A stretch of 64,000 nucleotides of DNA from Orbicella franksi (taxonomy: Eukaryota): contig OZ116699.1 of NCBI GenBank assembly GCA_964199315.1, positions 26,908,001 through 26,972,000 of the forward strand, read 5' to 3'. A model generated the notes under the pieces. That model was not told the DNA's origin, did not search any database, and was given only the letters and a program-made list of their open reading frames with translations. Position numbers and translations under genes: made by a program. This document shows positions 17,344 to 25,884 of the stretch, piece by piece; position 1 is the first letter of the stretch; every line of letters starts with the position of its first letter.

Positions 17344-17597
17344 TTAGATTGCGATGCTACATGAATTCGCAAACAAGGCATCACTGACAAGTTGAATTCC
17401 CATCTTTTCGACAAAATCAGCGTAATTTTTGATAATTGGCGAGTTGCAGTTCTTTTTCTCGGCTACTTTACGGTAGCATGCAAACCACTGGGCCGAATCA
17501 CCACAAATGCGTTCGTTTTGCTTCATCAAATCCAGGAACGTTTTACTGCACATGGTATGAACTTCGGCAGCACATGGGTCGAACGAGTCTCCGAGGC
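17344..17597 (-). CDS. Secreted double RGM-N/neuritin-like protein A, coding exon 3 (domain 2 and stop)
   Basis: Acceptor (GTT)10-TTTCAG|; phase 1 matches exon 2. Encodes (G)LGDSFDPCAAEVHTMCSKTFLDLMKQNERICGDSAQWFACYRKVAEKKNCNSPIIKNYADFVEKMGIQLVSDALFANSCSIAI*. AATAAA on minus at 17280-17275. Aligns with exon 3 of paralog B. Confidence 0.85.
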
Positions 17598-17602
17598 CTG
17601 AA

Positions 17603-17603
<1 letters not shown>

Positions 17604-17633
<30 letters not shown>
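17604..17633. repeat. (AAC)10 microsatellite forming the acceptor tract of gene A exon 3
   Basis: Ten perfect AAC units; on minus they read (GTT)10 directly before TTTCAG. Confidence 0.95.
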
Positions 17634-17635
<2 letters not shown>

Positions 17636-17945
17636 ATAACATTCTAATGACCACCAACCTCAGTTATAGCGTTTATAAAGGAACCAGCGATTGTGAAAGA
17701 CTGCATTTATAATTATTAATTCGATGAATTAGTTGTCCATTATTAAGAATTCCTTACCATAGTTTTCAACCAGTGTATGCTCCTTGGCAACATCTGCGTA
17801 TAAAAAGTTTGAATTGAACCTCAGAAGACTGATATTATAATATTATTCTATTACATTTTCATTGAGATTGCTATGTTGCTTTATAATTATTGATATTATG
17901 TTTGTATTAAGTTTCTTTTCACTCTTATGAAATACTTTAATTGTT

Positions 17946-18195
17946 AGAGTTTATAATGTATAAACACAGGCTTACCATTACTGTGGCTGTTTCTGGTTTT
18001 ATTTTATTTTTTTTATTTATTTAGTAATTTAGAGAGCATAAAGCACATTTATGGACTTCTACTAAATAATTTAATTTTTAGAGTTTATAACGTATACATA
18101 CAGGCTTACCATTATTGTGACTGTTTCTGGTTTTATTTTTATTTATTTTTCTTTAGCAATTCGAGAGAGTTTAAAGCAAATTTGTGGCCTTAAAG
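17946..18195. repeat. Tandem duplication, period about 134 bp, in intron 2 of gene A
   Basis: AGAGTTTATAA..GTATA.A.ACAGGCTTACCATTA.TGTG.CTGTTTCTGGTTTTATTT starts at 17946 and at 18080. Confidence 0.85.
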
Positions 18196-18209
18196 TTTTG
18201 ACTCTCCTC

Positions 18210-18497
18210 TTCTCAAACTCATTATATAACTCATCAAGTTTAGACAAAGGAAGTCATGACCGTGATGGTGTTTGGATATCTGATCTTAATTAGCATGGGA
18301 TTTTACGATTATTTCTACGTTTTCTCCTTAGTTTTAGTTTCGATTGAGAAGATATATCAAACGCTCCAGACAGTATTTGACCACATTTCCAAACACCTCG
18401 AATTTCGTCAAAAATACTCCGCGGCGCGTCGTATTTGCAACTCTCTTCTCGGTGTTTTGAAATGTGGTCAAACACGGTCTTTCGTGTTTGATATATT
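18210..18497. mobile_element. Hairpin-capped non-autonomous element, family 2, copy b (inverted relative to 4285-4568)
   Basis: Colinear reverse complement of 4285-4568; the hairpin tip reads GCGCCGC rather than GCGCAGC. Confidence 0.7.
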
Positions 18498-18709
18498 ACT
18501 AGAATATCTTAATCTACCCATGAAATACTTCTAAGACACCGGCCAATCTGACCGGTACGAGAAGAAATTATTTCATATTTAGGTATTCTCTTCCTTCAGA
18601 GCTCGCCGTCCTCGAGAGAAAAGTATGACCTAATTTGGGTTTAAAATCAGGTATATGAAGTTGGGTCGTAAATTCACTCTCTGAGCAATAATATTTCAGT
18701 TTCATTTAC

Positions 18710-22478: not shown

Positions 22479-22700
22479 GGGAGACTCGGTTGGCCTAATG
22501 TTTGAGGTGTTTGGACTGTAGATCAAACAGCCTTGTTTCAAGCACTGTCAAGGTCACTGCGTTGTGTTCTTTACTGGCAATGCACTTGACTCTCCACTGA
22601 CCTAGCAGTAAAAATGGGTATTGGCAGACTGTTTGTAAAACATCATTAAATGCTGGGGGTAAAACTGCTATTGACTACAGCCCAATTAAGGGGAAGGTAC
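22479..22700 (+). mobile_element. Old tRNA-derived SINE remnant (SINE2 with Deu/Nin-type core, tentative)
   Basis: Degenerate A/B-box head (GGCCTAATGTTTGAGG...GTTTCAAGC) followed by GTTGTGTTCTT...AAATGGGTA...AATGCTGGGGGTAA, resembling the conserved core of cnidarian SINE2s. Family call is from recall. Confidence 0.5.
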
Positions 22701-23353
22701 CTATACTAGTAATAGAGTTTAGTTAATAATCCTCATAATTTTAAGCCATTGCTTTGTTCCTACTTAGGTTTTATCGCATTGCATGTATTTAACCCTTCTT
22801 TAATGCGCATTTTTTGGAAATTCAAACGGATGCTTTATTCTATTTTTAACAAAAATTATAAATACTCCAAATCTCTTCAAAAACGTCACATGATCATTGA
22901 CTGTCGAAGATAATACTGTGTTTGCTTTGACGTTTAGTTTACTGCATGGGTAAGAGCAAGGGGTTTCCAAATAAGGTCACTTGCCTATAGAATCTGTGAA
23001 CGCACGTTGCACTTTTCAGCCACTTATGGGTCTCTGCTGTAATGCAAATGGTCACGTAATAGGTTTCTACGAAAACCATTGTGCTGTGTTAGCGGGCATG
23101 TGATACACTTGGTTGATTATAATTTTTAAATGATAACAACTTAAAAGTTGTTCAATCAACCGCAGTAGCAAAAATCACGTCTAGCAGGTATCGCTTCGAG
23201 AGGTAGCCCTTCATCGAAGGAACCTTGACAAAAAGGACAACAACGCAAATTATGTACGCTGTAGTTTTAAGATTTATTTTGCATCATGATAACGTTAACA
23301 AGTATGATTGGTTGGATGCGTGTCACAACCAACGAACTTAACGAAAAGCACGA

Positions 23354-23574
23354 CTAGGAATTGCAGTCAGTTACAAGCTCAGTCACCAATTCTCCAACGT
23401 ACTTGGCATAACGGACTATGGCAGATTCTTGGTTACAGTTGCTGTTGTTGTAGCATTGCAGCCAATCTCTGCCATCATCGCAAATGCGATGGTTATTTTT
23501 TACTTCATCAACAAACATTTTGTTGCACCCAAGGTGGACACGCCTTGCACAGTTCTTGTCGACATCAGAAATAA
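23354..23574 (-). CDS. Secreted double RGM-N/neuritin-like protein B, coding exon 3 (domain 2 and stop)
   Basis: Acceptor tatttcttttatcag|, phase 1. Encodes (F)ISDVDKNCARRVHLGCNKMFVDEVKNNHRICDDGRDWLQCYNNSNCNQESAIVRYAKYVGELVTELVTDCNS*. AATAAA on minus at 23278-23273. Absent from the ORF track. Confidence 0.87.
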
Positions 23575-24763
23575 CTGATAAAAGAAATAGTAAGGAATCA
23601 CTCTTTCACACACCTTGAGATAGGTGTTAAAACGTTTACGAATTATGCCCACTACAATTACTCTAAACGTGACAAATAAACACTCTGGGTTTTCTATAAT
23701 GAAGATGCACTAATTTCTTTTTTTACACTACAGGAATATAATATATGAAAACAAATCAATGAAAAAATAAATGAAATAAATCACTTACTGGAAGTCCGCA
23801 AGAAGTTATAGAAACGCTTTGGTATTGCTATAATCGACGACAATAACAAAAAAAAAAACATTAATTAATTAAAAGCATCATTCGTCATCTAACGAACACT
23901 GTCCCACACCCTGGTATAGTTTAGGAGTGAGTGAAGGAGGTTGTAGGAATTGAGAGTAATTTTCCTGGAGCCGGATTGTACAGGGTCATGCAGGAACGGT
24001 CACGCTAGTTTTGGGGACCCACGTCTATGCCATCGTTCAATTTTAATAAGACGCTAAGTATTTAGTCAGTGCTATACACTAGCTGCTTAACGATGAAAAT
24101 ATATTTCTGAGGTTCATGGGCGGCTGTTTAATTCCAATTGCGCCTCAGCAACATTTCTAACGAACAGAAATAAGGTCATGTTCTTGGCAATCAGCTCTCT
24201 TTAGTCTTGCTTGAGTCTTTTGTTGTCGACAGAATGGGATAACCTAGGCCCTTTAGGGTGAGTTTAAAAGTAGACAAACGCAGCAGTCCTAGGGGAGATC
24301 TTGGCTTTTTATTTTAACTTCAATTCTGTTAATGGCCTTACCATAACTGGAGTCCGCAGTTGAATTTGATTTGCTTTGTTACATATTCTTCCTTGCCGCT
24401 TTAATTTAAAAGAGGCCTGTTTTCGGCATTTCAAAGCAACAAGTTTTATTGGCCTGCAACACTCGGATCTCCATATTAAGTAGTAAGGAATTATTATACC
24501 GAAAAGTTGCGGGAAAATTCGGGATTACCGATGCGATAGAGCAACAACTTTACTCCAACTACAGAATGGAAATAAAATGGAAATTAACTTTTGTTATAAC
24601 ATCTAACCACGACCTGCATAATATGAACACCCCGTTTGGCTATTGATTAACCCGCTCATATCTGAAGTCGTCACTGTTCGGTCAAATTGATAGCGTTCGT
24701 TCATATATATATGAAGGGGTAGTCAACATTAAAAGGAAAATTCTATATAGAGCTTGGACTTAC

Positions 24764-24932
24764 AATCATCAGGCAATTTTCTGTAGAAGTTTTGCAGTCT
24801 TTGGTCATCAATTTCACACAAGTCAAGATACTTCTCCAACGTGCGAACCATTAACACCCATCCTCTCCAGCGTTTAATCATTCTACCCCGGGTGCATTCA
24901 GGGTTTTCTGACCAAAAACAGCCAAATACATC
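24764..24932 (-). CDS. Secreted double RGM-N/neuritin-like protein B, coding exon 2
   Basis: Acceptor cttattgcag|, donor GATT|gtaagt; 169 nt, phase 0 to 1. Encodes DVFGCFWSENPECTRGRMIKRWRGWVLMVRTLEKYLDLCEIDDQRLQNFYRKLPDD. Confidence 0.87.
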
Positions 24933-25328
24933 CTGCAATAAGAGAAGCTATCAGTTTTCAAAGAAACTTTTGGGCTGCATCGACGGGCAAGTGAAACACT
25001 TAGCTGGTTATCAGCTTCAAGTTCAAAAAGGTAAGAAAATCGCGAAGCAAACGTTTCGAGCAATGGAATTATGGCCAACGCTCGAAAAATCACCGTCACA
25101 GACTCGCTGCGGCAGTTTATCCACCTTTATCAACCTCAAGTTGATTAGCAGCTACGAACATGCCGCAGAGTTCAACGTGGGATGAGTTATTTGCTCCTTT
25201 TCAAAGTGATAACGAAATAAAAAAGCTGACGTTAGCTATTGCATTTAGTTTAGTATAGCTTCAGTTATAGAGTAGAATATTGTACATGTATGAGGCTTAC
25301 GGGCCTACAATAGATGTACTTATTCCTC

Positions 25329-25405
25329 TACAACAACAAAACAACAAAACAACAAAACAACAACAACAACAACAACAACAACACAAAAAGCTACAACAAC
25401 AACAA
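25329..25405. repeat. Compound (AAC)n/(AAAAC)n microsatellite in the intron between coding exons 1 and 2 of gene B
   Basis: Interrupted AAC runs read directly from the sequence. Confidence 0.85.
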
Positions 25406-25731
25406 AAAACAGCTCGACAACAAAACCTCCTGAAACCAGATAACCCAACGCCCGACAATTCAATAATTCGTTATTTCCTCTTCCATGAATCGCAATAAAA
25501 TGTGGGGCTGCAAACCTTAAATAATGTAGACATTTGTAATTTGCTGTGACAGTTACATTGTCTAAATTGCAATAAAAACCTGGTTTGGATATTTTTGGAC
25601 TTTGAACAGCTAAGCTGACCCTTAGCTTTGGTGAGGCATTTTCAATCGACACTTCTCCGTCGGACCAGTGTTCAGTTTATTCAACTGACGTGAAAGGACC
25701 AATTTATGTAAATAGAAGTCTCAAGAATTAC

Positions 25732-25884
25732 CCGCAAGCGGTCACAATGGGAGCTGATATCTGGCTTTTCATTCAACTCTTTCACGTATTTTTCTATGCA
25801 GTCTTTCACTTGGGCTCGTTCACAGTTGGCATCAGATGATACAATGAACCAAAACAAGATAGCCAGGCAAGAAAACCACTTCAT
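25732..25884 (-). CDS. Secreted double RGM-N/neuritin-like protein B, coding exon 1 (signal peptide)
   Basis: MKWFSCLAILFWFIVSSDANCERAQVKDCIEKYVKELNEKPDISSHCDRLR; donor CGG|gtaatt, phase 0, same position as in gene A; 5' UTR acceptor ttcttgttgcag 12 nt before the ATG. Spliced product 180 aa. Confidence 0.88.

Follow-up and report, generated by a model that had tools for sequence, protein, structure and literature searches.

In the present study, we analysed two genes, here called A and B, in a 64,000-nucleotide stretch of the Orbicella franksi genome (contig OZ116699.1, positions 26,908,001 to 26,972,000 of the forward strand; hereafter the window). Genes A and B are real, transcribed, tandem five-exon paralogues on the minus strand. 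Both products carry a signal peptide and 12 cysteines arranged in two six-cysteine domains, and they share 35% identity over the whole length (E 2e-31). No further copy of either gene was found in the 64-kb window. An original prediction, made from the DNA letters alone, had placed at this locus a pair of paralogous genes for secreted two-domain helical proteins, and the identity of the two products, their signal peptides and the predicted fold described below agree with it.

Gene models and transcription of the two paralogues

The RNA evidence for gene A consists of raw poly-A reads (X23) together with transcript contigs of two other studies (X10 and X9) over positions 17250-23249. The acceptor at 19381, which lies 18 nt before the ATG, was joined to a donor at 21361 in the 5' untranslated region (UTR) by 6 X23 reads with CT..AC ends. 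The junction 19190/18866 was found in 32 raw X23 reads and in transcript contigs from X10 and X9. The donor at 18710 is spliced to 17793 and not to 17597, as seen in 20 X23 reads and also in the X10 and X9 contigs, which hold 38 extra letters between the 18710 and 17595 pieces, corresponding to a 36-nt micro-exon plus 2 nt. No read or contig showed the direct 18710/17597 junction; the repeat at 17596-17645 was left out of read placement, and rare exon skipping is possible. The micro-exon encodes the linker D-V-A-K-E-H-T-L-V-E-N-Y, which matches the linker of the homologues P0005 and P0028. The 3' UTR extends to about 17255 (contig ends at 17250 and 17263), with AATAAA at 17280-17275, 64 nt after the stop. 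The corrected product of gene A has 206 aa.

For gene B, the evidence comes from a 1008-nt metatranscriptome contig (L012), which aligns to the window in the blocks 29424-29333, 25898-25731, 24938-24764, 23827-23786 and 23574-23032. This contig confirms the junction 25732/24932 and the acceptor at 25896 ahead of the ATG, and places a 39-nt micro-exon inside the junction 24764/23574. It also places a 5' UTR exon 3.4 kb upstream of the coding part, across a GC-AG intron (donor GCAAGC, AG acceptor at 25897). The micro-exon encodes S-I-P-K-R-F-Y-N-F-L-R-T-S, which is modelled as a helix (residues 109-119 of the fold described below, block-mean pLDDT 95-97, the predicted local distance difference test). 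AATAAA was found at 23278, 76 nt after the stop, and the contig runs past it to at least 23032, about 320 nt beyond the stop. The corrected product has 193 aa and differs by one residue from the database protein P0006 (193 aa), which is encoded on this contig. In addition, the share of sequence words of each gene that was found in RNA runs from a dozen studies was close to its exonic fraction, and both genes are therefore expressed.

These results revise the gene models of the original prediction. Of its four coding junctions, 19190/18866 and 25732/24932 were recovered in reads or contigs, while 18710/17597 and 24764/23574 are each interrupted by an in-frame micro-exon. The exon boundaries that it named are all canonical GT-AG, and its three-coding-exon models are open over 194 aa (A) and 180 aa (B); the micro-exon was overlooked in each gene, it encodes a confidently modelled linker helix, and its inclusion gives the longer products stated above. 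The acceptor expected just before the ATG was found in both genes (reads in A, the contig in B), and the AATAAA expected about 65-75 nt after the stop lies at 64 nt in A and at 76 nt in B. The exons of the two genes are collected in Table 1.

Table 1. Exons of genes A and B, in positions of the window
Gene	Feature	Positions	Strand	Remarks
A	5' UTR exon	21361..21449	-	donor end 21361 defined, upstream end approximate; low depth in bin 21250-21449
A	coding exon 1	19190..19381	-	acceptor 19381, ATG 19363-19361; signal peptide and Cys1-3 of domain 1; ends in phase 0
A	coding exon 2	18710..18866	-	remaining domain 1 with C-K-G loop and helix 3; ends in phase 1
A	micro-exon	17758..17793	-	36 nt, phase 1 to phase 1; AG/GT sites
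A	last coding exon	17344..17597	-	entire domain 2; stop 17346-17344
B	5' UTR exon	29333..29424	-	minimum extent; L012 residues 1-92 align at 100% identity
B	coding exon 1	25732..25896	-	ATG 25884-25882; signal peptide and Cys1-3 of domain 1
B	coding exon 2	24764..24932	-	remaining domain 1 with C-T-R-G loop
B	micro-exon	23789..23827	-	39 nt, phase 1 to phase 1; in L012 and P0006
B	last coding exon	23354..23574	-	entire domain 2; stop 23356-23354

Several repeated sequences lie in and around the genes. Microsatellites of the type (CAA/TTG)n were found in introns of both genes, at 17600-17645 in gene A, directly upstream of the last-exon acceptor, and at 25340-25410 in gene B. In intron 2 of gene A, the RNA-contig word depth rises to about 3,900 (18254-18500), and at 20650-21050 it reaches about 570; both stretches show many variant letters and many loose ends into unrelated sequence, and we take them for copies of transcribed, highly repeated elements, similar to short interspersed nuclear elements, that do not belong to the genes. 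An 81-aa open reading frame on the plus strand at 15110-15355 carries the motif …RLRWFGHV…RGRCRTRW…, typical of retrotransposon-derived protein tails, and is probably a retroelement fragment adjoining gene A.

Domain architecture, predicted fold and family distribution

Domain 1 of gene B has the spacing C-x7-C-x17-C-x8-C-x7-C-x25-C, and domain 2 of both genes follows C-x7-C-x14-C-x8-C-x5/9-C-x23/28-C. These patterns are as first described; domain 1 of gene A departs from them, with its fourth cysteine replaced and an extra cysteine at residue 106. The two domains resemble each other, since their profiles align with P 3.9e-5 in hhalign. Neither protein has an RGM_C/vWD domain, and both stop 2-4 residues after the last cysteine of domain 2. 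By inspection, the C-termini are short, form the end of the last helix and have no hydrophobic tail of the kind that signals a glycosylphosphatidylinositol (GPI) anchor; the mean hydropathy of the last 20 residues is 1.03 in A and 0.06 in B. The earlier statement that a vWD domain and a GPI tail are lacking was thus confirmed by the Pfam scans and by C-terminal inspection.

The protein of gene A was examined exon by exon and by script. AlphaFold2 was applied to P0006 with a 77-sequence alignment and gave eight helices with a mean pLDDT of 92 and a predicted template modelling score (pTM) of 0.85. In this model, domain 1 consists of three helices (residues 21-90), followed by two linker helices (94-102 and 109-119) and by the three helices of domain 2 (124-192). 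As the high pTM indicates, both domains are modelled as one rigid compact unit. Domain 2 folded alone also gave three helices, with a pLDDT of 93.8. Structure prediction, which had been proposed as a check on the cysteine-rich domains, therefore returned the expected helical two-bundle fold.

Cysteines are lost in pairs across the full-length members. The first and fifth cysteines of domain 1 are missing together in four members, the second and fourth of domain 1 in one, the first and fifth of domain 2 in one, and the third and sixth of domain 2 in three. Because of these paired losses, we infer the connectivity C1-C5, C2-C4, C3-C6 for both domains. Each gene would accordingly encode a signal peptide and, behind it, a compact module of about 170-185 residues that is helical throughout and held by six disulfides, in which two three-helix six-cysteine bundles are joined by a short two-helix linker, partly encoded by the conserved micro-exon.

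Searches with domain 2 sequences showed that the two genes belong to a larger family. Gene A domain 2 gave 9 matches in the 497-Mb genome of the same species, of which 8 are credible family loci; two of these are the genes described here, three form a cluster on the same chromosome at a distance of 4 Mb, and three other chromosomes carry one locus each. The cluster (G000:C2:22755243-22778825; L003, L004 and L005) consists of three very similar paralogues about 4 Mb from the window, and their last exons share a phase-1 acceptor. A profile built from the domain 2 exons of these loci retrieved 73 proteins out of 1.84 billion cluster representatives; none had an E value below 1e-30, and about 20 of the proteins are full-length at 175-250 aa. 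The named members come from Orbicella faveolata, Oculina patagonica, Pocillopora damicornis, P. verrucosa, Stylophora pistillata, Desmophyllum pertusum, Nematostella vectensis, Actinia tenebrosa, Exaiptasia diaphana and Actinostola sp., all of which are stony corals or sea anemones (Hexacorallia), and they are always labelled "uncharacterized", "hypothetical" or "secreted" protein. No paper in the library searched cites the family accession numbers.

The family is thus without a name or description in the sources searched, as the original prediction had supposed, although gene predictors already list members. The description of the two genes as hidden has to be withdrawn, since public databases already contain predictions of near-identical or orthologous proteins. 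The survey of distribution that had been suggested found members in stony corals and sea anemones only. Among the AFDB clusters, the template modelling score (TM) exceeded 0.5 only for four unnamed or uncharacterized proteins, at 0.65-0.76. One of them (A0A7M7GED1, 357 aa, uncharacterized) matches the whole two-domain module over residues 162-355 at TM 0.65, and to judge from this model the module may also occur fused behind another N-terminal region. Shape searches of the ESM Atlas returned generic helical proteins only.

Possible relationship to the RGM N-terminal domain and alternative explanations

The likeness to RGM's N-terminal domain (RGM-ND, the BMP-binding part of repulsive guidance molecule; Pfam RGM_N, PF06535) was examined by profile and by structure. 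The scans covered 24,736 Pfam models, and the gathering threshold of RGM_N is 24.2 bits. Below this threshold, RGM_N matches five family members in register from Cys1 to Cys5, on domain 1 in four and on domain 2 in one. The best of them are P0035 (domain 1, 23.3 bits, E 7.6e-5), P0050 (domain 2, 22.1 bits, E 1.9e-4) and P0023 (domain 1, 19.0 bits, E 1.7e-3), followed by P0066 (14.0 bits, E 0.061) and P0040 (12.6 bits, E 0.17). RGM_N was the sole extracellular cysteine-rich Pfam family recurring in more than three members, among the first 25 of 62 families in one scan. The same genome encodes a true RGM at C1:42.07 Mb, with an FGDPH site and RGM_C, and RGM_C was found genome-wide only there. 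The RGM_N spacing in corals, C-x7-C-x17-20-C-x8-C-x10-C-x21-C, is nearer to the family than the human pattern from which the likeness had been proposed. In hhalign against the coral RGM_N profile, domain 1 gave P 1.8e-4 and domain 2 gave P 4.3e-4, with the first five cysteines in register; none of the 150 shuffles of the columns came up to the scores of 25.1 and 23.3 (null mean 10, maximum 18), and reversed profiles gave 13.3 and 9.4. A second RGM_N match in the genome stands above the cut-off, at 29.9 bits (L011, G000:C5:31739663-31742842, match 31741163-31741342 on the minus strand). Its cysteines are spaced C-x6-C-x21-C-x8-C-x7-C-x22-C within one open frame, RGM_C was searched genome-wide and gave no match on that contig, and it may be a stand-alone RGM_N gene, possibly linking RGM and the tandem family.

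Structural comparison also gave matches to RGM-ND, at scores that unrelated three-helix bundles equal or exceed. In an exhaustive search of 48,161 PDB representatives with the whole model, domain 1 was superposed on the N-terminal domain of RGMB (RGMB-ND, 6z3m_C) over model residues 21-93, with 67/74 residues aligned at 2.7 A, 16% identity and Z 4.3, and this was the lowest-rmsd (root-mean-square deviation) near-full-length match of domain 1. For domain 2 alone, Foldseek placed RGMB-ND (4ui2_C) at rank 3 of 350,542 chains, with the top TM of 0.53 and the top probability of 0.30; by VIA, 60 residues of the same pair, from Cys1 to Cys6, were superposed at 3.6 A with Z 5.5. Furthermore, by inspection the loop after Cys5 of domain 1 has the form C-[RK/x]-G-x-hydrophobic, and that of domain 2 the form C-x-[AS]-x-I, beside C-R-G-[DN]-L in vertebrate RGMs and C-N-S-[DN]-[IL] in the coral RGM. 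In each domain, Cys5 is thus followed by a small residue (G/A/S) at +2 and by a hydrophobic one at +4/+5, the counterparts of Gly101 and Leu103 in RGMB. As a structural description, it is well supported that the two-bundle module is RGM-ND-like in fold class and cysteine pattern.

Taking gene structure, architecture and these comparisons together, the account we prefer, with slightly better than an even chance, is that A and B are expressed tandem paralogues of RGM-ND-like two-bundle secreted proteins, whose most probable mode of action would be the binding of BMP/TGF-beta-family ligands in soluble form. The RGM_C/vWD half is the neogenin-binding part of RGM. Because this half and the GPI anchor are lacking, the proteins would act as soluble extracellular binding proteins. 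The candidate ligand would be a BMP/GDF-type dimer, which might be contacted at its type-1-receptor epitope through the Cys5 loop and helix 3, and at that epitope the proteins could serve as competitor or carrier. In RGMB, Gly101 and Leu103 insert into the type-1-receptor site and form the core of the interface with BMP2 and GDF5, their mutation attenuates or abolishes binding, and His106 also has a role alongside them (PMC7354924). Fragments of RGM in soluble form act as inhibitors of BMP2 and GDF5 signalling in some cell lines (PMC7354924). As the original prediction stated, RGM acts in BMP patterning of Nematostella, membrane-bound RGM being a component of the patterning network of that animal (PMC10849676). 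The genome of O. franksi itself offers many possible partners, with 28 matches to the TGF-beta domain, some of which form a tandem array on contig 10. This array (G000:C10:20967342-21072265) has about 13 TGF_beta-domain matches, placed on both strands over 105 kb; TGF-beta-family ligand genes or gene fragments seem to have undergone a lineage-specific expansion there. A complex prediction of the mature gene B protein with two coral BMP2/4 mature domains scored 0.01 without controls and counts neither way. Taken by itself, binding of a BMP/TGF-beta ligand seems rather unlikely. We also hold it unlikely that this is a hexacoral-private, multi-copy soluble family of two RGM-ND-like bundles whose members would, as diffusible factors, antagonise or shuttle BMP/GDF ligands by binding to their type-1-receptor epitope.

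A number of results weigh against our preferred account. The RGM_N cut-off was reached by none of the family members, and the window exons and P0006 were without a match; single window exons gave nothing in Pfam at all. When the cysteines were masked, the hhalign scores fell to 10.7 and 8.8, beside shuffle means of 9.2 and 9.1, and the sequence signal is therefore cysteine spacing only. For the whole model, RGMB-ND ranks only 46 among the PDB representatives, and Foldseek of the whole model against the PDB and AFDB Swiss-Prot gave nothing below E 0.3. For domain 2, Z values of 5.8-7.9 were obtained with MIT domains, designed bundles and a phage tail protein, compared with 5.5 for RGMB-ND. A full-length family profile did not find RGM among PDB sequences, and the position of His106 of RGMB is not conserved in the family. 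Judged from the model, one rigid two-domain globule does not favour a clamp over both sites of a BMP dimer, which it would fit poorly, and the functional role of every family member is a prediction by analogy. Since generic three-helix bundles score as well and the signal lies in the cysteines only, common descent with RGM_N is plausible and more probable than not, yet unproven. The proposed RGM-N likeness is hence partly supported: cysteine spacing, sub-threshold Pfam matches, hhalign and superposition speak for it, and it is weakened by the loss of signal on masking and by the equal scores of generic bundles. The Foldseek check brought up RGMB-ND for domain 2 alone and not for the whole model.

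The same results can be explained by disulfide-stapled three-helix bundles that arose independently of RGM and serve some function peculiar to this lineage and apart from BMPs, for instance in immunity, adhesion, mucus or matrix. The spacings C-x7-C and C-x8-C would simply be two helical turns, the similarity outside the cysteines is nil in the masked profiles, generic bundles are equal in structural score, and restriction to Hexacorallia with expansion in tandem arrays is typical of fast-evolving secreted effectors. However, an independent origin does not account well for six cysteines that all stand in register with coral RGM_N at a score that no column shuffle reproduces, for the separate recurrence of RGM_N, out of all Pfam models scanned, on both domains, for RGMB-ND as the top-TM PDB match of domain 2 and the lowest-rmsd near-full-length match of domain 1, or for the small and hydrophobic residues after Cys5 that are common with RGM. 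We therefore consider this explanation improbable.

Another explanation makes the family a cnidarian offshoot of the nematode DUF19 (T20D4.11-like) and CPG4 group of secreted cysteine-rich proteins, or a product of convergence with it, the 12-cysteine module being one unit with a non-BMP role, for example in the extracellular matrix, and the RGM-N likeness being secondary. DUF19 is described in Pfam as having 12 conserved cysteines. By language-model features, the nearest named clusters are DUF19 at 0.87 (178 shared features) and 0.85 and CPG4 at 0.84, which is the remaining point against the account we prefer, and domain 1 alone is nearest DUF19 at 0.76; all these scores are below 0.9, the level under which a match is a lead only. 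Pfam CPG4 gave weak matches in 3/77 members (best E 0.0072, below threshold, among the first 25 of 62 families in one scan), yet a scan of 20 full-length members at E up to 10 gave no DUF19 match. In the AFDB clusters, rank 30 is taken by a DUF19 protein, but at TM 0.29 and probability 0.38. In the genome of O. franksi, DUF19 gave one doubtful open reading frame with an internal stop, and the CPG4 search one sub-threshold match, both away from the family loci. As a lead, DUF19/CPG4 is as live as RGM_N, but on this balance a DUF19/CPG4 affinity in place of RGM appears rather unlikely; a wider superfamily including RGM_N and DUF19/CPG4 is possible.

A role as venom or nematocyst toxins or as skeletal organic-matrix proteins would agree with small, secreted, cysteine-rich, multi-copy and cnidarian-restricted products. 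Members also occur in sea anemones, which have no skeleton, so the family is not tied to skeleton formation. The Pfam scans (one showing the first 25 of 62 families) brought up no toxin or matrix family, and the names in the sources are only "uncharacterized" or "secreted protein"; proteome lists were not searched by sequence. We regard this role as very improbable. The resemblance to neuritin that had been proposed was not sustained, since NRN1 was found neither in the Pfam scans (again with the first 25 of 62 families in one) nor in the fold searches; the similar C-x8-C-x7-C core of neuritin is a point of the original prediction. Literature searches on a neuritin-RGM link and on DUF19 gave nothing usable. 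Among other candidates, SETD2/HYPB, CD38 and NSE1 in the PDB-sequence profile search were chance-level matches, and zf-RING-like Pfam matches in 14 members (best E 0.017) were an artefact of a C-A-x3-H-x2-C string in a secreted disulfide protein.

Significance and comparison with known systems

Corals and sea anemones pattern their second body axis through BMP signalling. What is new in the present study is an RGM-ND-like unit in a tandem, anchor-less secreted architecture and an unnamed, hexacoral-restricted multigene family that contains it. Because Nematostella has several members, the family is a good experimental lead, and with the knock-down, over-expression and pSMAD1/5 read-outs that are routine there, these members are tractable candidates for new extracellular BMP/TGF-beta modulators. 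If the link to RGM holds, it would document the RGM-ND unit outside RGM. If BMP binding is true, the proteins would form an unrecognised extracellular layer of BMP gradient control beside Chordin, Gremlin and membrane RGM, acting in directive-axis patterning or in adult tissue signalling. If the DUF19/CPG4 link holds instead, a large orphan nematode family would be tied to a structural class whose mode of ligand binding is known. Should both links fail, this would be one more lineage-specific secreted cysteine-rich family, and the corrected gene models would be the lasting result.

Among the known systems, neuritin (NRN1/CPG15) is likewise a small six-cysteine protein, secreted or GPI-linked, whereas the present family has no GPI signal. 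DUF19 (PF01579) and CPG4 (PF15481) are also secreted, cysteine-rich, helical extracellular modules of similar size; they differ in their nematode taxa, in the weak structural match and in Pfam models that give no useful score on full-length members. Compared with full RGM proteins (RGMA/B/C and DRAG-1), the family is without RGM_C/vWD, the GDPH autocleavage site and the GPI signal. The closest comparison is with RGM-ND of RGMA, RGMB and HJV (4UI2, 6Z3M), itself a three-helix bundle with three disulfides. The domains of the family are likewise modelled as three-helix bundles, and the six-cysteine spacing is nearly identical to that of the coral RGM, while similarity outside the cysteines is not detectable except for the short motif C-x-[GAS]-x-hydrophobic, noted by inspection. 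In the present family the domain occurs twice in tandem, packed as one globule with a two-helix linker; furthermore, domain 1 of the family is split by a phase-0 intron and coral RGM_N lies in one exon. The nearest relatives are the uncharacterized hexacoral proteins with the same predicted fold (TM 0.65-0.76 to the AFDB cluster models), which carry no annotation or published function. The same two-domain, 12-cysteine architecture is found, for example, in the members from Nematostella (LOC116611902, LOC116614719 and LOC116619978), Stylophora (LOC111337564), Pocillopora (LOC113674748) and Orbicella (LOC110063195).

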